A DNA stretch of 64,000 bases, taken from NCBI RefSeq assembly GCF_964204645.1, contig NC_134031.1, positions 17,161,807-17,225,806 on the forward strand, written 5' to 3'. The position numbers were made by a program, and so were the translations under genes. This DNA is from Tubulanus polymorphus (lineage: Eukaryota > Animalia > Nemertea). Every line of letters starts with the position of its first letter. The stretch's first letter is position 1. The notes beneath the pieces were generated by a model that made no database searches, had not been told where the DNA came from, and saw only the letters and a program-made list of their open reading frames with translations. Shown piece by piece: positions 18,536-45,428 of the stretch.

Positions 18536-21500
18536 ATGAATCTCTCGTGCGAATTCGACAAAGAGAAGTTATCGAATTCACTCATCGAAGCCGTCATCAG
18601 GTTTTGCCACGATAACGTATCGTTCAAAAACTACTTGAAAGTGTCCGGTAAAGTGACGCTCGACATCGACAGCGTCACCTGGTCGACGAATATCAACGAA
18701 GTTTTCTCGTCGACCAGCGATACGATTACCTTGCCGGACTTTTCTTTGGACCCGATCGCGTCCGCTAACGTCGATGACGCCGACAAAAGCGATCTGGAGC
18801 CGCCCGTTTGCGCGGTGGAGGCGACCGCGAAGTTTCCCGATATCGAGTCGATTCGCAATATGCCCGATTTGTATCCGCGAATCGAACAGATTCACTGCGA
18901 AGAGAAAGACAATATGGCCGCCGTCGCGCGGCACCGTCACATGTCCGACGGAATCGCGAATCTCCTGCACAGAAATTCGATATTTCAACCGTTCTCCCAG
19001 TTCCACCCGACGACGAGCGAATCTCACCTCGTAAACTACTCGCCGAATAAACGAAAACGTTGGAAAAGCGGTCTTCCCGAATCGGACAACTTCACGCACC
19101 ACGACTTCGAAGAGAAAGAAAAGTCGGTTTACGAAATTCTCGGACTCGATACATTCTTCGCCAATCAAAACGAACCATCCGGCGACGGCGCGGCGTACTC
19201 GGGCGGCGGACGTCATAAAACGATCAGCATGTCTTCGGATAAAATGAGTTTAAGCGACATCAAAGAATTTCTGCTGACGCCGCGACTGGACAAACAGATC
19301 GGCGCGAACGAACCGCCGCGCGATAAAGAAGATGACGCAGGCCCGGCCGATGTCGAATCTTTCCTCGTGAAATGCGGCGACGAGAATCGAATGGTCGCGT
19401 CCGAAAGCGCCGGGTTGAGCGAAGAGCACTGCTGCGCCGGTATCGACGAAGATTTGACGCAGATGTTGCAGGTTTTGTCGTCGGACGGCGACGAATGTAT
19501 GGTAGAGCGGCCGAACGGCGAGATTCTGCCGTCGTCGGTAAAAAATGAACTACCGGTAGCTGCTGCTGCTGCTGCGACGAGTGAGGAACTCATCGCTCAG
19601 CCGACGTTCATCGCGTGTATGAACGACGGCGAGAACATCGTCACGATACGAGAGTCGGATTGTTGCGGTCTTCAATCGGCGGTCGGCGTCGTCGAAAAAT
19701 CACCCGATTCCAATTTTCAGAAGCCGTGTTTGAAGAAGAAAAGGAAAGCGCGGAAAAGCAAACCGAAAAAACAGCGGAATTCGAATCCAACCGTCGCTGA
19801 AATACTGATGCAAGAAAGTCATGTTAATGTTTTATGGGACGGACCTCATCAGAAGAAGTTATGCAGGTACATCTTTTTAAATCCAAGACTTTTCTCATCT
19901 AAATGCTCAATGAATAAGTATCAATAAGTATTCAAGGGAAGACCAAGGGCTCTAGTCCTGCCCTGAATTATTATTATCATCATAATTATTACAAAACATT
20001 TTTTGAAATTCATGCCGATTCGGTCTCATGATTCATGATCAAAATCTCCTTTCCAATGCCTAGAAAGGGCCTCAAATTTTCCTAGACCCTCCTTCTTGGC
20101 TTTTGGGTGACCCTAATGGCAGGAAAAAGGTGCCATAGAAATGTCGGTCGACCTAAAAATAACCCTAGATTCGCCCATGATTATCATGATTATTATTATT
20201 GTTAATAGGTATTGTCTGAAGGAGTACGACGAGAAAGAAGGACTCGAAGAGGAGCGTCAGCAGCCGCATGTCTGCGAGGAGATGATCTGCACGTTCTGCG
20301 GGGAACATTTCGCGACGGAAACGGAATACGCGAAACACGTATCGAAAGAACATTTTTCGTGTTATGTTTGCGACGAAATATTCACCGACGAAGTGACGAC
20401 GATTAATCATAAATATATCGAACATCAACACTTGATTTGTAGGCTTTGCGATCGGTTGTTCAGATCGGAATCGCGTCTGAAAGAGCACGGCAAGACGCAT
20501 TTAAACACGCAGGGAATTACTGTCAGTAAAATTCAAGATTCGCACGCCGATGCCTTAATACCTGTAAGTATAAACTCTAAAGCTCATTCCTCGTCCTTCT
20601 CATACGAGTAGAGAACGTTGCGCTTTCAAATAAGATATTGCTGATAATTTTGGGCATTCACATCCTTCAATTTATGTTGTGCCAAGGTTATTTTCGATTG
20701 ACATCTATCGATTTCGACCACGGAATACGCTTTTTACCCTATTCCAGAATACTCTGTAAACCTGTTATTAGAGAATGACCTGTTAAAGAGTTGGTAATCT
20801 GGAATTGGTATGCCTAAATCGGAATACTACCCAAGTTTGCTAAATAGATACCGGGATTAAAGCTCGGCAAAAACACTGGCTGACGATTTCTGTCAAATGA
20901 TAATTGCTTTACCAAATTTGATCATTTCCTAGTATCAAATCAGTCAATAATGAGAATTTGTAGTCGTTTAGTGAAAATGATGATTTAATTTTGTAGACAA
21001 CAAGCTCCATCAGTAAATGTAACTATTGTGAAATATGCAGTAAAGTGTTTCTAAATGATACAAAGTACCAGCAACATATGGAGCAACATTCAGGTAATAT
21101 TGATAGTTGTCAGTCGTCTGATTTGAGTCTTGAGTAAAAATCTGCTTATTTCTCGAAAATCTTCTAGATTCAAATTTTTTGGATTACATAGGTTGCTATT
21201 CATTACTTTATGTTTTCAATTGTCAGCTTGGCTCTGGAGTACATTAACATACCGATTCATATATCTGTTTTCTTTGTTGCAGTTACGAAACCGTTTCAAT
21301 GTGAAATCTGCGGTAAATCGTTCCGACTGAAAAGACTTCTTCGTCAGCACATATTGACGCATAACAAAGAGAAAGAGTGGATCTGCCAGATTTGTAACAA
21401 GGGTTTTAAAGTAAGATGGGAGATATTTCATTATCTAAAAACTGGAAACTCCTTGTAAGCGCCAATTGTAAATATAGAATTCCACACTCTTAAAGAAAAA

Positions 21501-23035
21501 ACTCTTGGTTTCCTTTAGTTAATGGTATAATGGTTTATTGTCAATGTTTTGACGGCCATATATCTCGATGATCGTATTCGGGAATACTTAATAAATTATA
21601 TTTTACAATATGTAACAATACGGGGTTCATCAATATTAATCCGTCTGTTGTTCACGTGTTTCAGACTCGTACGAATATGAACAATCACATGAGAATACAC
21701 AACATAGATAAACCGCACGTGTGCCTCGAGTGTAAAAAAGGATTCCGTCAAGTTGAAACTCTTATCAGTCACAGAAAACGTCATAACAACGGAAAGAAGT
21801 TCGTTTGTGAGGTTTGTATGTTTAACAGGGTTTAGTAGCAGTTGCCCTACCCCCCAGTATTTTTGGAAAAATTCCCTTTCGTTACTTTTTGGGTGACAGT
21901 GACCCCCCTCTTAAGTCAAATGCTAGGTACAGCCCTGTTTAGTCACGTTACTGATCAGTTGTGAAGTACTGTCTCCCTCTGATAAGTTGCTACATCACTT
22001 CTCTTCTCTATTTTTTAAGTCCTGATTTGTATTTCTAATTCAGTTAACTAAGATTATACCATCATGACATTTGTATCAGCTATGGCAACTTCGACTAGTA
22101 TTTCGAATGTCAATTCTGCAATTATTTTGTAAACAAGAAAATTGAAAATTGCTCTCATTCATCGACGCGTTTTCAATCTATAAGATTCTTGCGCAGTTGA
22201 AAATTTGATTCGTCTAATCCTGTCTGAATTATAGATTTGTTTGAAAGTCTTGTCGAATGAGGTGACGTTACGCGAGCATCTCTGCATGACTCACTCCGAT
22301 ATCGAGTACAAGTGTCCGAAATGCGATCTTTACTTCAAACAAAAGTACGTTTTTAAATCATTTTTACGGTTGTCATTTTAATGATTTCGGCATAATTTTC
22401 GGAGATCTTATTTTTCGTTTTATTCTGCCAGACGCGCTATTCGTCGGCACTTACAGGTGAAACACAACGAGGGAGATAAGAAATGGGCTTGTTATCTGTG
22501 TCAGCAGAAGTTCCCGGCTAAAGATTATCTCAGTGTAAGCAATTTTGGTTCTCGGGCTTCCACGAGACCCTTATTCTCATACTGTCTGTCTATCTGGGTC
22601 TGTGTGTCTGTCATCCAGCTACTTAGCTTCGTTAATAGCGGGCCGATCCTGGTGAAACTGTTTCACAGTGACATGACCTTTAAGACATGACATCATAATC
22701 GGGGAACAGGGCTGAAATTCAAAAAGTTATCCTGACAAAATTTAGCTCTTGGCTCTAGATGCAATATATCCGAAACGCAATGGGAACTAATGCATGGGAA
22801 TTTCTGAGTTCGAGTCTGAGCCCAAGAACCATTGTCGCCTATGGCTTGTTGATGATTTTACAATCTTCGCTGGGCTCAAATTCGGATGAGGCGTTTCGCG
22901 AAAATCTCAGTTTTGTTATTTTTACGTATATTTCAGTATCACATGAAGACAAAACATACAAATGAAAGTAACAGTTTACAGTTGTTATCGGTAGCGGCGG
23001 AAATGGTGATCAATTCGAAACCGGAAACTAATTAG
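18536..23035 (+). CDS. Multi-C2H2 zinc-finger protein; exons 18536-19866, 20209-20563, 20997-21093, 21283-21410, 21665-21811, 22235-22344, 22432-22534, 22937-23035
   Basis: About 10 C2H2 fingers (CTFC..H..H, CYVC, CRLC, CEIC, FQCEICGKSF..HILTH, CQIC, CLEC, CEIC, CPKC, CYLC) are spliced in frame through canonical GT-AG sites. They follow a long acidic N-terminal region with a KKKRKARK NLS-like stretch. Confidence 0.9.
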
Positions 23036-23549
23036 ATGCAGTTATCGGTGTTAATCCTCGTAAAGATTCGTTTATCGAAAAGTTATTTTCGACAAAATTT
23101 GGTAAACTATAATGTCCTTAGTTTAATAATAGCGCACCTTAATCCTCTTGAATCAATGATTTGATCTTTTCTTACTTTCAGATGGTCGTAAAGTGAGTCG
23201 ATATTCGTCTCTGTCAAACAATGTATCTCATCTAGTCATAAGTCGGAGTACTATTGAACTTTATTTTTATAATATTTTACTAAATATACCATAAATAGAT
23301 AATGGTCTTTTTTCCTGGTTGAAATATACATGTTTATATTAATATAACCAATAAGCAGTGTCAATTTTGATGTTTTGTGGGATGTCTTCCAAGGGTTTAT
23401 GGTAAGGATATCTGCAACTGAAGTGAGAGGACAACTGCTAGTGACTCGAAAGAGAAATTAACCTCATTGTACCATCAAGTTCAGTAAAGTCATCATGTGA
23501 TAAGTCATTTCATACACTGAAATTGTCTATTTTTGAGACCGACTTTCTA

Positions 23550-23717
23550 CAGTGGAACCTAGTTTTAACGACCTCGGATATAACAATTTATATAGAATTT
23601 CGTCCCAAATACGACGATATCTTTTAATTACTTTCATACTGGATATATTAAACTATCGGTTATAACGAACAGATTTTCTGATTTGCGGCCGAAGTTCGTT
23701 GCAATGAGGTTCCACTG
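23550..23717. mobile_element. Tc1/mariner (pogo/Tigger-like) MITE
   Basis: TA|CAGTGGAACCT...AGGTTCCACTG|TA; family copy at 48297-48473. Confidence 0.8.
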
Positions 23718-24191
23718 TATTTCTGTTTGAATTTATGGTACTAAGTGTACGTCGCCAACATTATGATAGACCCAATTATGAGGAGTTTCACAGTATGTCT
23801 GTATGACCTAGAGAACAACGAACAATCAATTGAGACCTACAAAACCGTTTTTAATAGAAATTAAATATTTCATCAGCACAGAAATACAAGAACTAGTGAA
23901 TGGGTGCAATGCACAAAAGTTTTACTCCGTTAAACTGAGCAGTTTTCAGTGTATTCAACCATCACTGTCTCAGACTAGCACCTCGGTTTTACTGTTTGTA
24001 CGAAACTAACAATGTTATTAAGCTTAAGCAGAACGTTTAATCGAAATAAACCTCTATAACAATCGCGCACTACATCCGTGTGTCATCGACAACATATTTC
24101 ATCTCTTAACGAAATATTTGAGGTCATTCGTCTGAAAAAGTTCATCGCAGCAGCTTCGGTGTTTATCGCTAACTACGGTATAAGTGATCTA

Positions 24192-24374
24192 CAGTAGACT
24201 ACCCCCCCCCCCCCAGTCAGATCTGTTCAACTCGGATTTTCTTTTAATTATTTCTTGTGACACTATATATGAAATACATAACATCTGACAGGGTATCACT
24301 CTCAAATCGGACTTGCATAGAAGTCGGAAGTATTTTAAGGGTCCCAAATGATCCGATTTGAGCGAAGTCTACTG
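24192..24374. mobile_element. Tigger-like MITE
   Basis: TA|CAGTAGACT...AGTCTACTG termini with an internal ctcaaatcgga/tccgatttgag inverted repeat. Confidence 0.55.
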
Positions 24375-35789: not shown

Positions 35790-38624
35790 AATTATCGTAT
35801 GCGAAATACGCGCTTTACCTTCGTACTTAAATTACGGCAGCAGTATTCGAATCGCAGAGGAATCGGCGGACTTCTGGAATCGGTGGTCTAAATGAATCAA
35901 CAGAGGAATCATTGGTCTTTGTGAATCGCAGAAGTTTATAATGCTGATATTTCATACAGACGTGTTCTTTCTATCATATAACACCCCTGTCTCGCAGATA
36001 CTTGTAAAAACTTATAGGATAATAAAACTAGGGTATTGGTGTATGTATAAACTGAATCGGTGAGTCTAGGTAATTAAGAGGTAGAACATTTTGTTTTCGA
36101 TAAACTTGGTAGTGGTAGTGTTTAGAAGTCTAGGGCGTAAAGCTTTGAAGTCAAATTTGAAATTATATCTGTGAAACTTATATCTGAAGATTTGTTAAAA
36201 TATATCATATATTACTGTTACATTCGTTATAAGGAGCAAATCCTGTATGCATTCATGAATCCTACAAAACTCGTAGTCATATCACATTTGATACTTTTTC
36301 TTGTTATCTATTATTGGCCATGGGTAAACTATACTATATGTACTAATGTTATGATTCTCCTGGTGTGATTAAAGGGGTTTTACTGTTAGGTTTTAAGGAA
36401 GAGATGTATTTGTAGCGTATTCGAATGCTACGTACTGTTAATCGTGTCTTATATAGATATTTATAACGTCTTTTCATTCATAGAGAGACTTTCTTCTTGT
36501 TGATGTTTTTATTTTTGAGTCTATAATAAAAATCGAAGAAGCAATAAAATACTGTCGGCAATAACCTGGTTTTCAGATTTATTGAATCATCGAATCAAGT
36601 GAAGATTTTTTGTTTGAATGTCTTGAAGGGTGACAAGTTTTGTAGACTGGTTCAGACTCTCTAGATGTCTTACTGGATATTCTTGGATATTACCACAATG
36701 AAGCAGCATTTCTGCGAGGAATTGGATTGATATGTGATTCATAAAATAACTGAGAAATTGAGGAATTTTTCATGAAATGGTTAGACTTTATTTAACATTT
36801 ACACATGCTAATCTTCGTATGATCTGTCTTATTATTGAGCGCTAACATATTATCACATCTACCAGTAAACATCAAATATAGTTCGAAAATATTGACTGAT
36901 TTTACGTCCTACTACGGTACTGTTATGCAAAAATGGGGCAAAGAAACACGCTAGGTCATCAGACTGCAGTTCCACATAGGAAACAAATTTACTAGCAGCT
37001 GTGGAACTGTTAATTCTCCAGATCTAATCTAATGTTAATGAATTAGGATTACTAAAATTCAACAAAAGGGGTAGAATATTTGGCACGCACATCTCCTTAT
37101 TTGTCTTTTCGCCTCTACACGTATTTCTGGTTAGAAAACAAGAGTAAGGAAGATGGCCGTTAACATTACAATCAGTAATTAGTAAAAAGTGATTATTTTC
37201 TTGCATTTTTGGTATATCGAGATATAATCTACTGCAATCTAATACATACATGGTTATACTTGTGCAGGCTGGAAAACGTTTCACTAGATTCAGCTATCGG
37301 TGATTATTAAGCTAAAAATGTCGAATACTGCTTTATTAATCATGATTTTATGGCTGACTTAAAACAAAACAACCAGTGATGATTAAGTACACTTCAATGA
37401 TTAGGCATTCTTAGGCCAACAACATTCACGCAGGGACGTGAAATTATTGTTGAAGGGTCAATTTAGTTTGCTATTAGCGATAGAATTTATATCCATTTAT
37501 GTTCATCAAGTTTGCCATTATATCTGCTTGTTTATAATTTCCACACATAAAGTAAAAATAACTATATACAGCAATATTCCTGTGGTTAGTCTATATAAAC
37601 ATATTCTACAACTGGCGGCCCAAATATTTGTATATTATATTGAACAATCTCCATTTTGAGCCACACGTAGTCTCTGGAACCAGCGTTTCTCCTTAATGAA
37701 TTGACTGGTATCGAATTATGAACATTTTTCGCTGCACTTTCAGTCCAAGTTGATTTTCGTTACATCTGCCTATTCATTGTAACTGTTACGCTGCTTGTCG
37801 GAAGAGTAGGGAAGTTCTGACCATTTACTGAAACACGAGTCCAATATTTTTGTTTCATTAAAAATGCTGAATGATCTTTGTCATTTTCTTGATGAACTAC
37901 ATGTGAAATTATCATAATTGTGCATCTTGTATTTTGTAATCCCGTAGATTTGCAATTGATGTAGTTGAATAATTCCAATCTCTACAATGTACTACATTTA
38001 CACGCACATACAATGAGCCATAAATCTGAATCTATCAGTACTAACCTTGTATTGGATCAGGTGGCTAACAATTAGGATTTTTCAGCCATTTTCAAATCAA
38101 TCCAAAATAGTTTCATTTCTAGTGCATATAGCAATGGTAAATGCATGGGTCTAATGGTATTCAATCATCATAAATTCCAGGGGAATGATTTAGGGAAATT
38201 CCTGCATCTTTCATCTCGGTGCAGATGTAAAATCCTCAGTGACTCGAAATCTATTGGCACATCCAAGGCCTATAGTGAAGGTCGTACTCTAAGGCGACAC
38301 TTACCAGTGATTAAAGCCCAAAACTTACTAGAATTGTGATTTCCTCATTCGGGAGTTAGAGTTTGAAAATGTATATCCACTTTTAGATTTAGGAATAGAT
38401 AATAGTCAAGATATTCCTGCATAAAGTGGCATGTATATACCCTCACTATAGACTAACAACTAAACAACAAAGAAAGAAAACTCCATAACAGAAAAGCAAC
38501 AAAACAACATCAAACACATGAAACCAAAATAATGCAGTAAATAATCCATATATTTGATAAATATATCTATTTTCTTAACAATAAAATGTGACTAGATATA
38601 CAGTTACTGTGTACACAACAATAG

Positions 38625-41600
38625 TTACGATAATGTACCTAAATCGACGCGGTTACCACCTTCATTTTCAACGAGAGTCACTTTCATATCGGGATCTGCT
38701 TGTTCTTTACTGGCTTTCATACGTAATTCCTGTTGGTAACCTCTGAAAATTGCCACGGGAAATTTTAGACAACAGAACAAGAAAATATGAGTATCAGAGT
38801 ACTGTAAGGCTAAAAAAATTGATACCTTGTTTCTCCGCTCTGCTGAGCTTAAATGTTGACCCGGCCGGCCGCCTATCTACCCTATACATTACTTTTTTTA
38901 AAATCGTGATCAATTTCACCATAACAGACCCGGCCGCTATAGAAATGAACTGTTTACAAATTTTATCAAATTTTACAAAAATGACCCGGCCGCTGCGGAG
39001 AAACAAGGTATCATTTTTGTTTAGCCTAAACTGTGCCCATCCAATGAATGGCTCAAGCCACGATGTACCCTTCTAGAAATGCTTGATATACATGTACCAG
39101 TATTGTAAACATTGCTTAACTTAGGCTGAACAGAGATCTTAACTTTTAAGCTGTTAAACGAATTATCCTTATAATCAAAGACTTGACACACGCTAAATTT
39201 CATGGACCTTATATTAGTCAAAGAGAAGCAAGTTCGATACAAAGGTCGATTACTCAGTAATAAATATAGAATTACAACTTGTAAAGAGATAGAATAGATT
39301 TAATCTTTCGTACACATATACAAAATATACAATATCTATTTGTTTGTTTTTTTCTTAGACCCATAAACCCTCAAGTTACTCTACGTATATCTCATTTCTG
39401 ACAACTGGCAATACAAGTTTATTCGAGATAATTATTTTACCGAATTACTTATATAGGGAGCTGAAACCTACAAGTTGAGCTAGTATTTATAGTATTGAGA
39501 CATTACCACATTACCAATAAAGTAAAGAGAATGGCAAAACGGGCTAACATATACAGAAATAGGGCCTATTTTAAACTTGAAACAAAACAATCTCAAAAAG
39601 AAATGCACAACGAAGTGAATGACTAAAATAATTGCACAATCAGCCGACTGAAGATTTGAATGTAGAACAAGCTAATTTCGTCGAGTCATAAAGAGCCCAA
39701 TAGGGCATTCATAAACTGGAATGGAGAAGAAAACTAAAGGCAATGCACATGCATCCTCTCTTCACAAAATCTCAGGAGATGGCATAGATCTCCAGATCAT
39801 AAATACTGAATGAACGCATATAACAGAAAATACATTGATAAGGTAGTAAGTTGAGTGCAGCACATGTAAGAATGCACTTGACAATTTTAACTTACAACTA
39901 ACACACTCGAGGAAACTACAATTATCGAATATCTATGAGCCAACATAAAACAGTATCAAATTGATAGACGTATCAAGTAGTTCAATAACTGAGATAGCTA
40001 GGTTTAGACTTTGTAATAAAGCGTACCGGTATATAAAACTTTTGTTGTTTAATAGATATTAATCTTATTTGATGTTTTATTCATTTATTTGTTATTATCG
40101 AATGTAAGATGTTTTTCTCGTAAAATGGAATGCGGGACGAACTATCATCATCGTGTTAATCGCTTCGAATGAATATCAGATCATTGATTGACCATCGGCG
40201 AATAGCCTTCCGAAGTGGTCCGACTTTGCATTAATTGAGAATTTTCTATATCGCCCGAACGCGATTTCGAAGCCGTCATTTTCATTTCGTCGACGTCGGC
40301 TCTGAAACAGAATGTCGTTCGTTAAAAACAAAAAACACAGCACGCGACGGGAATAAGCAACCGAACTAAGCCATTGCATAAATATAATGTGAGATACAAG
40401 CAACCGGGCTGATGAAATGTGAACACAGCAAACATTTTTTTCGTGCGGCGAGCAAATGAAAACATCACAACTCCATAAATCGTGTCTATTCAACTTAATA
40501 CGAGAAAAATAATTCTACAAAACATGGCTAGGGACAAACGAAATACTTACTTCGTTCGAAATTGTATCTCGCAAAATACAGTTTCGGGTAGATTTTTATA
40601 TGTACCAGTTTTACAGCGATGGATTTAACAGAATTCACAGCGTAAATCCTCAACTGAGTACACTGGGGTGTGAGGGCTTAATTCTAAACTCGTTAAAATA
40701 TCGAAAAACACTCGGAAAGCATTAACACAGACGAACGATATAAGCTTACTTTTTTCCTAAAGACATAATACCATATACAACTCCGGTGCCGATAATCAAA
40801 GCACCACCAAGACCAGTGGCGACACCAATACATGTCGCTGGTGGAATGACGCCAAGTCTGAAACATTAGAAATCAAGCGCAAATGTAAGTCACAGCTTTG
40901 AGATCCAGATTGCCTAAAGATACCTATCTTATGTAACTTTTTTTCATACTATTTTGATAACATTCTTTGCCCCTCCCACAAAGGAGACCATGAAAGATTT
41001 TCCTGACTTCAGAGTGGCATTTGAATTTTAAATGCGCCATTGGAGTTTTTCAGCCCTATTAAAAGGGAGAAAGGAGGCCAGTGAATAAGCCATGAAACAC
41101 AGGGTTGGCTGCCACCAGAATTCGAACCTGGAGCTCTTAGATTGACGAGACTGATGCCTTAAAACCACTCAGCTCCTGCAACTCCTACGAAACAAATCTT
41201 ATTCTAGATTTTATGCTGCGAAACTTACAGGACATAAACAATAGCTTTCTGCCAGTAAGCTCTATTATCGACAAATTTTGTTACGCTGTCCACGAAGTCA
41301 AGAAATGGACAACAGCAAGGCGACTCGCAGAGGATCAATGCAAATCCAAATAACCTGAAATATATAATTTGTAAAACGTTATTCTACATATTGGCAAGTA
41401 GGCCTATACCATTAGACTTCAGGTGGGCTGGTTCCATAGTCCATAGTCAATTCTAATAAAAGTGGTCTTAGATTTTAAGACTGGTCATAAGTTGTTAGAT
41501 TGGTTTATAGAGCCAATATGGTCTGAGACTGGTCTCAAAATCTGAGCCATGCATGCAACTGGACCGTGGGCCCATTTTCACACAAATCTTTGTTGTACCG

Positions 41601-42003
41601 GGTAATTGCTATTGGTTATTTCATGTTTTCAATGAGGACAACAATTCAGACTCAAATGATTTAAGCTTAAACTTTTCAAGCGAAACTGGACCCAGGTAGC
41701 ATCCCGATAACTTACATTTGTAATATTCCAGCTATCAAACATCGTGGTGTTACTGTAACGCATGCCCAGACACCCGTACACAAAGCAACTGAAAGACATT
41801 AGCATTTTGTAGTGGCATACAGGTAGTACAAATTCAAACACAGGGTGCAATAAGGAAAGTATCGACGCATGGTTCTACTAATTCTTACTGACTCCTCCAA
41901 TAGTGCCGAGACCTCGAGCCAATGTCCTCATCCACCAGCTGACCTGAGGATTTGACGGATGCCCGGCACCTTCAGCGCTCGGACGTTGAAATGACTGACC
42001 CAT
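38625..42003 (-). CDS. CACFD1: Calcium channel Flower homolog; common exons 42003-41889, 41788-41716, 41354-41229, 40857-40750, then distal terminal exon 38742-38625
   Basis: VSWWMRTLARGLGTIGGV, CLIAGILQM, LILCESPCCCPFLDF, YWQKAIVY and GTGVVYGIMSLGKK are hallmark Flower/CACFD1 motifs. The distal exon adds GYQQELRMKASKEQADPDMKVTLVENEGGNRVDLGTLS*. Confidence 0.9.
38808..39026. mobile_element. PIF/Harbinger-like MITE, intact copy
   Basis: TAA|GGCTAAAAAAATTGATACCTTGTTTCTCCGC...GCGGAGAAACAAGGTATCATTTTTGTTTAGCC|TAA. Other copies at 15058-15502 and (partial, inverted) ~32440-32550. Confidence 0.85.
40181..40301 (-). CDS. CACFD1: Alternative proximal terminal exon of CACFD1/Flower
   Basis: Acceptor tctgtttcAG at 40303-40302 in the same phase as the donor at 40749. 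Encodes (K)ADVDEMKMTASKSRSGDIENSQLMQSRTTSEGYSPMVNQ*, with AATAAA hexamers ~40089 and ~40082 downstream. Confidence 0.8.
40950..41185 (-). mobile_element. tRNA-derived SINE-like element in a CACFD1 intron
   Basis: Minus strand GGAGTTGCAGGAGCTGAGTGG..GGTTCGAATTC gives A-box/B-box spacing of a tRNA head but no intact acceptor stem. A second B-box (GGTTCGAATCC) fragment lies at ~42350-42395. Confidence 0.5.
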
Positions 42004-42670: not shown

Positions 42671-45428
42671 ATGATCATCGAAGCGAAGGACAGTTTGACC
42701 AGCTTTTTAACTGGATCTTGTATCATTTTGATCGCAATTCTAGCAAACATCGGTGGACCATTCGCCTTTGTATTTAATAACTTTTTCTATATCGCTATCG
42801 CGCTTTACGTGGTCGTGTTCGGTATCTGGTTATCGGTTAATTTCAAAGGACCACGTTTTCAGGTAATCACAATGATTTTGATTGACATTTTAGCGTTGTA
42901 TGTCGCTCCTTAACCTACTGTCTTCTAACATTGTTTTCCGTAATAATTGTTGCGATGCCATTTCGTTGTTAATCGGTTGATCTACAGTTATTTATTATGC
43001 ATCAGTGTCTCTCGGTAAACTACAGCTGGTAATGATAACAAAAAAACAAAAAGTTGTTGTGTATTCATAGTTTATTTCCTTACTGAACAAACTGATGCAT
43101 AATTAAGTCTAATACCCAGCCGTTGTCAGGGAACCGTAACAACGACTGGTATTCAGACAAATGTATAATGTATGCAGATTATTGATGAAATTAAGGAACA
43201 AAACGTCACAGGGATAGCATGTGCTGCAAACAGTAGATGTATGGTATGGTAATCCACTAACATAAGGCCATATATAAAAGAAGTTACTTCATTCTCATCA
43301 AAAGTTATGAAAAAAATCAGGGGGAGGTTAATGTTTTATATAGAATATTCCACTAGCTCTTACGATATATAGCCTATATGAAGGCTAGCAACACCTCTAT
43401 CTTGTCGCTGAAAGAAAATCGGTCAATGTGTGTCAATAATCTATAAACTTTGTGAACTCGTACTACATATCTGTATGTCTATATCGATTGTTTAGACTAT
43501 CATGTTTCACTTTTGTGTAGATCAACATAAAATATTGTTAGTCTGATTTTTTTATCGGAGGCAGTAATTTATGTTTTTTATTTCAAAATATAAAAATAAC
43601 TCCAGGCGGAGCGGGTAATATGGCCTAACCCCTTTCTCCCATTAATTGCCTGCGCTCCAACGATACTTTTTTCGATTGTTTCAGAATGCTATCCGAGGTG
43701 GATTTCTAGGTCTTGTGTTTGGTATCGGACTGATGTTGAGTGTGTCGGGATGGGTCGTAATGCCGCTCGGTTGGTACATCGCGATGCTCGCGTTCTTTCA
43801 TTGGTCCGAATACTTCGTTACGGCGCTTACGAATCCATCGCACATCGTATTAGATTCGTATTTACTGAATCACAGTACGGCGTATCAAGTGGCAGCAGTA
43901 GCGAGCTGGATCGAATATACGATAGAACTGCTCGTGTTTCCAGGTAAAATGCTTCAAACGCGAACCACTATAGTACGTATAGGATGACAGGGTTCTTATC
44001 GTTTTGTAAGGAATATGAAATAGATCTCCGCTTGAAAATGATTGTAAGCGAATTTGAAAAATCCGTGAAGAATCGTGAAAATTGTAAGAAGTCCGTCGTA
44101 ATATTTTGATCCCCCTTTTTGCCATGAACAGTGGAGCTCCGATTTTATGCAGTGTTGAAGCTATGAAAAATTTTACGCGAATTCTGTTCAGATTGTGATC
44201 ATCCTTTGTACCTTGACGTAAAAAATGTGAAAAATCTTGGTATCGTAAAAAAATGGGAATTGAATGCCAATTGTAAGTGGTGTGAAAAGTGTGAATTTTT
44301 CCAATCTAACCCCTAGGATGAGAATGTTAGATATGTAATATTTACTTGATGTTTCTCTTGCATTTTAAAAAAACTTTTCATGGTTTGAGTGAAATTTATA
44401 TTTTCAGAGATGAAGAAAGTACTTTGGTTGAGCGCGATTGGATTGTTAATCGTAATGTTCGGCGAGGCGTTGCGTAAAATAGCGATGTGCACGGCGCGGT
44501 CGAATTTCAATCACTACGTTCAACACGTCAAAGAAGAAGGACACATTCTCGTTACGCACGGTGTTTACAGGTTTTTCCGTCATCCGGCTTACGTCGGCTG
44601 GTTCTGGTGGAGCGTCGGAACGCAGGTTCGTTTCGTATCTCATTCAGACGCTCCCTATTTGTTTCTTCGGCTATCGATCTACTCCCTGTACCCACGAGGC
44701 CACATAGGCCTATAAAAAGAAGTGGTTCCTTTGATTTTGGACCCACAGTTATTGCAGTGTGACCATTGACCTGGAGAACTCAGGGGATCAGAGAAATCAG
44801 GAAATTTGGCAAATTTTACCAAAACCAGGAAAACTCAGGGGTTTTATATATCCTATTGACCACGCTTTTCTTTATCAATACGTAATCTTCATGAAAAAAG
44901 TGAATAAATGGTTAGTAACATTTTAAACCAAGAAGTTCCTCGGATTTACCCCTGGGCCCGGTTTCATTGAGTATCAAAGTTATCCCTAGGGGTAAATCAT
45001 GAATCTGGGTGATAACCACCATAGTTACAATGAGAAACCATGGTTATAACCGACAAATTTCAAAATATTCCCAGGGATTACTTTTCTTCCACATCCATGA
45101 AACCTAGCCCTGGAATTTTGTAACATCGAAAAAATCAGTGAAATCTTAGGGAATTTGTAAATAAGTGGAAAGTGACCATGCTGTATTGTCACAAACCCCT
45201 GTGGTATGTCTCTACGGTTGTATAGGTTATATATTTCTCTTTCAGATCATTCTAGTGAATCCTATATGTTTCATCGCGTACACGGCCGCTTCGTGGAAAT
45301 TCTTTCAAGGTCGCGTCGTAGCCGAGGAGATCACGTTGCTGAATTTTTTCGGCGAGCAATATCTGGACTATCAGAAACGCGTCGGAACCGGTCTACCGTT
45401 CATCAAAGGTTACCGCGGTGAGTTATGA
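42671..45428 (+). CDS. ICMT: Protein-S-isoprenylcysteine O-methyltransferase; exons 42671-42862, 43685-43943, 44408-44625, 45246-45428
   Basis: FFHWSEYFVTA, SYLLNHS, GEALRKIAMCTARSNFNH, HILVTHGVYRFFRHPAYVGWFWWSVGTQ and EEITLLNFFGEQYLDYQKRVGTGLPFI. Confidence 0.96.
44755..45183. mobile_element. hAT-like element (CAGGGTGGCCAC family) with a nested Harbinger-like MITE at ~44953-45110
   Basis: cagtgtgaccattgacctggagaactcagggg head with tcagggaa repeats, as in copies at ~52345 and ~57437. The internal element has gggcccggtttcat..atgaaacctagccc termini. Confidence 0.5.

Follow-up and report, generated by a model that had tools for sequence, protein, structure and literature searches.

Probable lineage-specific tandem duplication of the C-terminal tail exon in the Flower gene of the nemertean Tubulanus polymorphus

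In this study, we analyzed a window of 64,000 nucleotides from the nemertean Tubulanus polymorphus (contig NC_134031.1, positions 17,161,807 to 17,225,806; all positions below are those of the window), which carries a Flower (CACFD1) gene on its minus strand. Our analysis suggested that the exon encoding the C-terminal tail of this protein has very probably been duplicated in tandem, and that the duplication is specific to the lineage of Tubulanus. The distal copy, here called exon 5b, belongs to the annotated protein, and the proximal copy, exon 5a, is located between exon 5b and the last of the four exons that the two tails would share.

A Flower gene with two candidate tail exons

The gene corresponds to the RefSeq entry XP_074655707.1, a protein of 197 aa named 'calcium channel flower homolog [Tubulanus polymorphus]', whose sequence covers exons 1-4 and 5b and then runs into a sixth exon. 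Exon 3 alone matched the Flower domain of Pfam (PF10233, Cg6151-P) at 35.8 bits, with a cut-off of 29.2, and the same domain is precomputed on XP_074655707.1; domain and RefSeq name together confirmed the identification as Flower made in the initial annotation of the window. A search of exon 3 against 1.84 billion representatives yielded 89 Flower homologues, to which word searches added named ones, and the closest of those retrieved were at most ~57% identical to the Tubulanus core over the aligned stretch. Because exon 3 has one match in the whole 268-Mb assembly, indicating a single-copy gene, and because the Tubulanus exons, taken one by one, tile the full length of a mollusc-type homologue (P0097), the gene can be regarded as the Flower/CACFD1 orthologue and as neither a paralogue nor a fragment. 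The conserved second-helix glutamate of the E-[AS]-P-x-C-C motif is present (LILCESPCCCPF), and transmembrane helix 4 (TM4) ends in GIMSLGKK, which has the conserved GKK end and aligns column for column with P0097. Residues 1-141, including all four membrane helices, are encoded by the shared exons 1-4, and these constitutive exons have GTAAG donors and TTTCAG acceptors throughout (Table 1).

The phase-2 donor after ...SLGK at the end of exon 4 can join two acceptors in frame, and the split codon is AAA (lysine) for each. One of them, ctgtttcag/A at 40301 (slashes mark exon boundaries), opens exon 5a, which has its stop at 40183-40181 and encodes a 39-residue tail starting ADVDEMKMTASK; the other, aattttcag/A at 38742, opens exon 5b, which has its stop at 38627-38625 and encodes a 38-residue tail starting GYQQELRMKASK. 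Both peptides with their coordinates and the AATAAA hexamers at 40089, 40081 and 36583 were found as the initial annotation had described them. Its remark that the list of open reading frames (ORFs) shows neither exon in the correct frame was mistaken, since the ORFs 40181..40285 and 38625..38780 show both tails.

Among the homologues retrieved, the tail that follows the conserved GKK of animal Flower proteins carries two motifs: one at its membrane-proximal start, A-[DS]-R-x-[ED]-M-x-x-x-A, and further on an acidic one, ..[DE]-V-E-[ML]-x-x-T-L-x-[ED]-N-E.., which is followed in molluscs by VDLHVP. For the start motif, a position-specific scoring matrix (PSSM) of log-odds over 11 positions was built from 67 non-Tubulanus homologues and applied to all 68,389 stop-free 11-mers in the six frames of the whole window. 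The start of exon 5a, with the canonical ADVDEM..AS, ranked first of all with 22.3 bits, the runner-up reaching 11.5 bits, and this best match sits exactly behind an in-phase AG. By the log-odds bound, a score this high or higher has a background probability of no more than 2^-22.3 at any one position, or ~0.01 window-wide, and the chance probability is far smaller over the few in-phase AG sites of the right intron. Group-specific matrices were also built from lophotrochozoans only, from the arthropod A-type tails only and from the arthropod G-type tails (described below); the 5a start was again at rank 1 with the lophotrochozoan matrix (15.7 bits) and the A-type matrix (20.2 bits).

Other properties of exon 5a are exon-like as well. 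Its acceptor, with 11/20 pyrimidines and TTTCAG, equals those of the constitutive exons in quality, and its GC content of 0.46 lies above that of every 121-nt window of the flanking introns. Two AATAAA hexamers follow its stop; such hexamers occur 67 times per 64 kb on the minus strand (about one per kb), so the pair lends mild support only. Judged by its match to the family, exon 5a is evidently a true copy of a Flower tail exon. A transposon or repeat origin was considered and rejected, as the DNA of 5a is unique in the genome. We also observed that the CpG density of 5a reaches 11.6 per 100 nt, whereas most introns have 1-2.6 and the remaining exons 3-6 (interval 40181-40749), and that the intron upstream of 5a is likewise CpG-rich (5.4 per 100 nt).

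Exon 5b is tied to the family through the other end of the tail. A profile hidden Markov model (HMM) of 21 lophotrochozoan tails was run in HMMER local mode against 3,864 fragments of the window, and 5b was its top match (16.6 bits, E 0.0012); the tail of the nemertean Lineus longissimus also matched 5b by tblastn (E 0.003). The second family motif is nearly intact in 5b, reading DMKVTLVENE..VDL, and the 5b tail contains no YxxPhi motif. Its start has strongly diverged (5.2 bits, rank 33 on the tail-start PSSM). Read through to its stop, the tail ends in GTLS and has the canonical length. Exon 5b is thus, on the HMM evidence, a true Flower tail exon, and the tandem duplication proposed in the initial annotation could be upheld, for 5a through the PSSM and for 5b through the HMM. 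Neither tail, searched singly, gave a Pfam match. At the 5b acceptor we observed a tandem CAGAG (38741-38744); splicing to its second AG would move the frame by 2 nt and terminate the protein ~10 residues later. About 70 nt upstream of this acceptor lies an insertion resembling a miniature inverted-repeat transposable element (MITE), which contains an internal 42-nt direct repeat ending GACCCGGCCGCT.

Table 1. Coordinates of the Flower exons and associated features in the window
Feature	Position	Strand	Evidence or remark
Flower exon 1, coding part	41889..42003	-	ATG at 42003; phase-1 donor GTAAGA; identical to the N-terminus of XP_074655707.1
Flower exon 2 (from the end of TM1 to the beginning of TM2, ...AGILQ)	41716..41788	-	tiles on P0097; matches XP_074655707.1
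Flower exon 3, conserved core with CESPCCCPFLDF motif	41229..41354	-	PF10233 match; single in the genome
Flower exon 4 (TM4; ends ...SLGK plus AA)	40750..40857	-	phase-2 donor AAAAAA/GTAAGC; matches XP_074655707.1
Exon 5a, putative unannotated proximal tail-exon copy	40181..40301	-	39 codons plus stop; rank 1 on the tail-start PSSM
Two AATAAA hexamers, candidate proximal poly(A) signals	40089-40084 and 40081-40076	-	92-105 nt after the 5a stop
MITE-like insertion	38812..39021		terminal inverted repeats of 27 nt with 93% complementarity
Exon 5b, distal tail-exon copy	38625..38742	-	in XP_074655707.1; top match of the lophotrochozoan tail HMM
Exon 6 of the RefSeq model	37760..37827	-	22 further residues plus stop; XP_074655707.1 mapped onto the DNA

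Age of the duplication and possible present-day use of exon 5a

Exons 5a and 5b lie adjacent on the same strand and in the same phase, and their coding parts are of similar length (121 and 118 nt), each starting with A after the AG. Together with their common homology to the Flower tail and the single copy in outgroups, these are the features of a tandem exon duplication. Each exon also has its own stop and downstream AATAAA, as expected of terminal exons, the signals being consensus hexamers only.

The direct resemblance between the two copies is a different matter. The initial annotation had taken the alignment of the two peptides as implying exon duplication. The identities are real: E5, M8, A10, S11, K12 and D17 give six matches at offset 0 versus 1-2 at other offsets. 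As an argument of its own, however, the alignment is too weak, for BLASTP of 5a against 5b returned no alignment and the Smith-Waterman score of 28 had a shuffle p of ~0.05. At the nucleotide level, 17/36 positions were identical in register over the first 36 nt (null 9.0 ± 2.7, p ~0.005). The strong evidence for homology comes from the comparison of each exon with the family, the direct similarity alone being weak. When the identities were split by codon position, positions 1-2 had 13/24 and position 3 had 4/12, the latter at the random level, although these counts are small. A search for DNA repeats found none linking the 5a and 5b regions. Because neither the third codon positions nor the flanking DNA retain similarity, the duplication is judged to be old, and the codon-position pattern suggests that both copies have been constrained at the protein level, as would be seen after an ancient duplication of this kind. 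Despite this age, 5a keeps an open frame of 39 codons, a TTTCAG acceptor, exon-like GC and two AATAAA hexamers. The two copies have diverged in a complementary manner, 5a keeping the start motif and 5b the acidic motif of the ancestral tail; the acidic TL.ENE motif has been lost from 5a, which has a YSPM (YxxPhi-type) motif near its end.

Several observations weigh against the idea that both exons serve as alternative ends of the protein today. RefSeq gives a single product without an isoform label, and this product uses 5b; no protein with the 5a tail, either full-length or as a fragment, was present in a collection of 5.8 billion protein clusters, and a fragment word search with the alignment of exons 4, 5a and 5b returned 71 candidates, none of which scored. 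Additionally, the lophotrochozoan tail HMM gave 5a only 2.5 bits (rank 23 of the 3,864 fragments). The homology of 5a therefore rests on its first ~11-19 residues, about the first half, and the second half has no recognizable family motif, which also fits partial decay. Furthermore, on the RefSeq model 5b may not be terminal at all.

The first of these points bear on the most serious alternative, namely that 5a is a relic: after an old duplication 5b would have taken over, 5a would be unspliced or noise, and its frame, acceptor and motif would have survived by chance or because the loss was recent. An annotated protein containing 5b only, the disappearance of the conserved acidic motif from 5a and the lack of 5a-containing proteins or fragments in the databases are all in agreement with such a history. 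The saturation of synonymous positions and flanks speaks against it, since a copy that had been neutral for so long should have lost its 22-bit match, its 39-codon frame and its acceptor, and the GC content of 5a, higher than in any 121-nt window of the surrounding intron, likewise counts against a relic. The absence of an annotated 5a isoform would also carry little weight should the RefSeq model have been made without transcripts. We consider the relic a genuine possibility, if a doubtful one; that 5a still serves today as an alternative last exon is plausible and somewhat to be preferred.

As for 5b, the description of both exons as terminal held in that each of them has its stop; the only annotated protein uses 5b, and there it is not terminal. 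The RefSeq model leaves 5b at an internal donor (exon end 38639, TTTAG/GTACAT) and joins it over an intron of 811 nt to exon 6. The distal 3' untranslated region (UTR) of ~2 kb proposed initially is broken up in this model, with the 811-nt intron and a further coding exon lying inside it. Exon 6 can be doubted, because the donor leading to it is the only one of the gene without GTAAG, because its peptide had no Pfam match and corresponded to nothing in the tails of the retrieved homologues, and because reading through 5b already gives a tail of canonical length; it is possibly a third C-terminus or an annotation artefact. Further AATAAA hexamers on the distal side are located at 37337, 36792 and 36583 (36583-36578).

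Distribution in spiralians and arthropods

We compared the Flower loci, each with 10-kb flanks, of four other lophotrochozoans: the nemertean Lineus longissimus, Pecten maximus, Liolophura sinensis and Owenia fusiformis. In every one of them a single tail exon scored 25.8-31.4 bits, with the intron position and phase of Tubulanus, and no second tail exon was found in the four loci, nothing else exceeding 10.4 bits on the gene strand; Lineus was also scanned on both strands. On these genomes, the duplication is evidently not general to spiralians. It is lineage-specific as far as can be read from these loci, because the four other lophotrochozoans have a single exon and no Tubulanus start resembles the arthropod G-type, and it can be dated only to the time after the split from the Lineus lineage. 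The initial claim that the duplication is the lineage's own was thereby corroborated. Among the homologues there was also a mollusc-like Flower of 140 aa (P0008), in which the end of exon 3 (..ALYCG) is joined straight to a canonical tail, with no TM4 exon; either exon skipping or a faulty prediction would explain it.

Arthropods have a tail pair of their own. In Pancrustacea, pairs of RefSeq-predicted isoforms with A-type and G-type tails were found for Thrips, Cydia, Pieris, Phlebotomus, Odynerus and Palaemon. The two types (A-type ..LV.NAQP..FTG.., G-type ..TLMEDPDVWRP) are conserved across insects and a shrimp (P0118-P0141), and both begin right after the conserved GKK/GRK. In Phlebotomus papatasi (fetched locus 19048-24291), they are encoded by tandem tail exons, the G-type 375 nt and the A-type ~4.9 kb after the TM4 exon.

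These pairs raise the question of whether the Tubulanus exons descend from an ancient protostome tail pair equivalent to the arthropod A and G types, which would have been lost in molluscs, annelids and Lineus, so that there would have been no independent invention. The spread of A-start and G-start isoform pairs over Pancrustacea, the fact that Tubulanus too has one A-start and one G-start tail, and the identical intron position and phase in Tubulanus, Lineus, Pecten, Liolophura and Owenia could be read in this way. Measured with the G-type profile, however, the two Tubulanus starts reached only -0.1 and -1.2 bits (ranks 342 and 533); the A-type profile gave higher scores for both. Moreover, 5b has a mollusc-type ..TL.ENE..VDL end; the order is reversed, the proximal exon being the G-type in Phlebotomus and the A-start one in Tubulanus; and the four lophotrochozoans with a single exon would demand several independent losses. 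Common descent of the two pairs is thus very improbable, and the Tubulanus pair looks independent of the arthropod one; orthology of 5b to the arthropod G-type tail, considered separately, was rejected because its start is unlike the G-type. Least credible of all is a chance origin of 5a, in which both the open frame and the AG before it would be accidental and the likeness to Flower tails a coincidence: the weak direct similarity of 5a and 5b and the commonness of AATAAA in AT-rich DNA would allow it, but the first rank among 68,389 11-mers window-wide with a margin of ~11 bits, together with the correct strand, intron and phase and an exon-like composition, leaves hardly any room for it.

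In the neighbourhood of the gene, a multi-exon gene resembling isoprenylcysteine carboxyl methyltransferase (ICMT) lies on the plus strand at 43646-45428, head to head with Flower, and its last ORF has a sub-threshold PF04140 match (19.3 bits). Between the two genes there is a hydrophobic plus-strand ORF of 80 aa (42671-42913) with no Pfam match. The upstream neighbour of Flower in Lineus and Owenia is an Abhydrolase_1 gene in opposite orientation; it was not seen in the Tubulanus window, where the ICMT-like gene is on that side instead.

Possible function and comparison with known Flower systems

If both exons of the duplicated pair are used, an ordinary choice between alternative last exons would suffice, the phase-2 donor at 40750 being common to both tails. 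If this donor were joined to the acceptor at 40301 and the transcript cleaved at the AATAAA pair (near 40050, ~100 nt past the stop), a short mRNA with tail A would result. Skipping of 5a and splicing to 38742 would produce tail B, ending in GTLS and a stop or, after a further splice, in RefSeq exon 6. That the two exons are used in a mutually exclusive way is a reading of the anatomy only. The resulting proteins would share the channel and trafficking core and differ only in the cytosolic C-terminal tail. In the topology of human and mouse Flower, the C-terminus is cytosolic and carries sorting information, for example the YxxPhi motif YARI (PMC13470650). In Tubulanus, YSPM occurs without an acidic motif in tail A, and the acidic motif without a YxxPhi in tail B. 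Altered trafficking, sorting or partner binding would be the likely effect and, as we infer, the simplest guess.

A win/lose 'Flower code' in Tubulanus is speculative, and nothing in the sequence supports it. It is disputed whether the alternative C-termini of Flower are a general fitness-labelling system or a peculiarity of flies, and the mammalian isoforms arise differently. That a palaeonemertean has independently evolved a two-tail Flower switch and uses its tails in different settings, such as neurons on the one hand and regenerating or stressed tissue on the other, to label cell state or fitness in convergence with the fly code, is improbable in our judgement. Should the spiralian duplication of the tail exon hold with both copies under selection, this would speak for tail diversity in Flower being favoured repeatedly, and the split of the motifs between the copies would amount to a natural dissection of the two conserved tail motifs. 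In addition, the finding points to a coding exon that is missing from a RefSeq gene model and casts doubt on the last exon of that model.

Alternative C-terminal exons of Flower are already known in flies and predicted across arthropods, and the Tubulanus pair would be a new, independently arisen case. First, in the Drosophila gene fwe a variable fifth exon follows four shared ones (PMC13470650). As in the fly (isoforms RA/ubi, RB/LoseA and RC/LoseB), the four exons of Tubulanus encode all of the four-helix Cg6151-P core (residues 1-141, against 1-147 in the fly), and tandem tail exons lie downstream of the TM4 exon, the fly fifth exons each having their own 3' UTR (PMC13470650). Unlike the predicted Tubulanus pair, the fly isoforms have been confirmed with isoform-specific in situ hybridisation, and roles in cell competition are reported for them; the Tubulanus exons do not appear orthologous to the arthropod G-type tail, and their proximal/distal order differs from that of the dipteran Phlebotomus. 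Second, the pancrustacean A/G pair likewise consists of two alternative tails, encoded by tandem exons in Phlebotomus. It is group-wide and has distinct signatures, whereas both members of the Tubulanus pair would derive from the canonical spiralian tail, with its two motifs split between them. Third, human and mouse CACFD1 (hFWE1-4, mFwe1-5) belong to the same family and have a canonical tail with the acidic ..TLE.E.. and the YxxPhi motif YARI (PMC13470650); their variants arise by internal exon skipping and frameshift, which remove parts of the core, and not from duplicated last exons (PMC13470650). Fourth, the tails of the single-tail spiralians (Lineus XP_064648737.1, Pecten, Liolophura and Owenia) have the same motifs, AD(R)..M...A and ..TL.(E/D)NE.., which in these species stand together in one tail exon, whereas Tubulanus has two.

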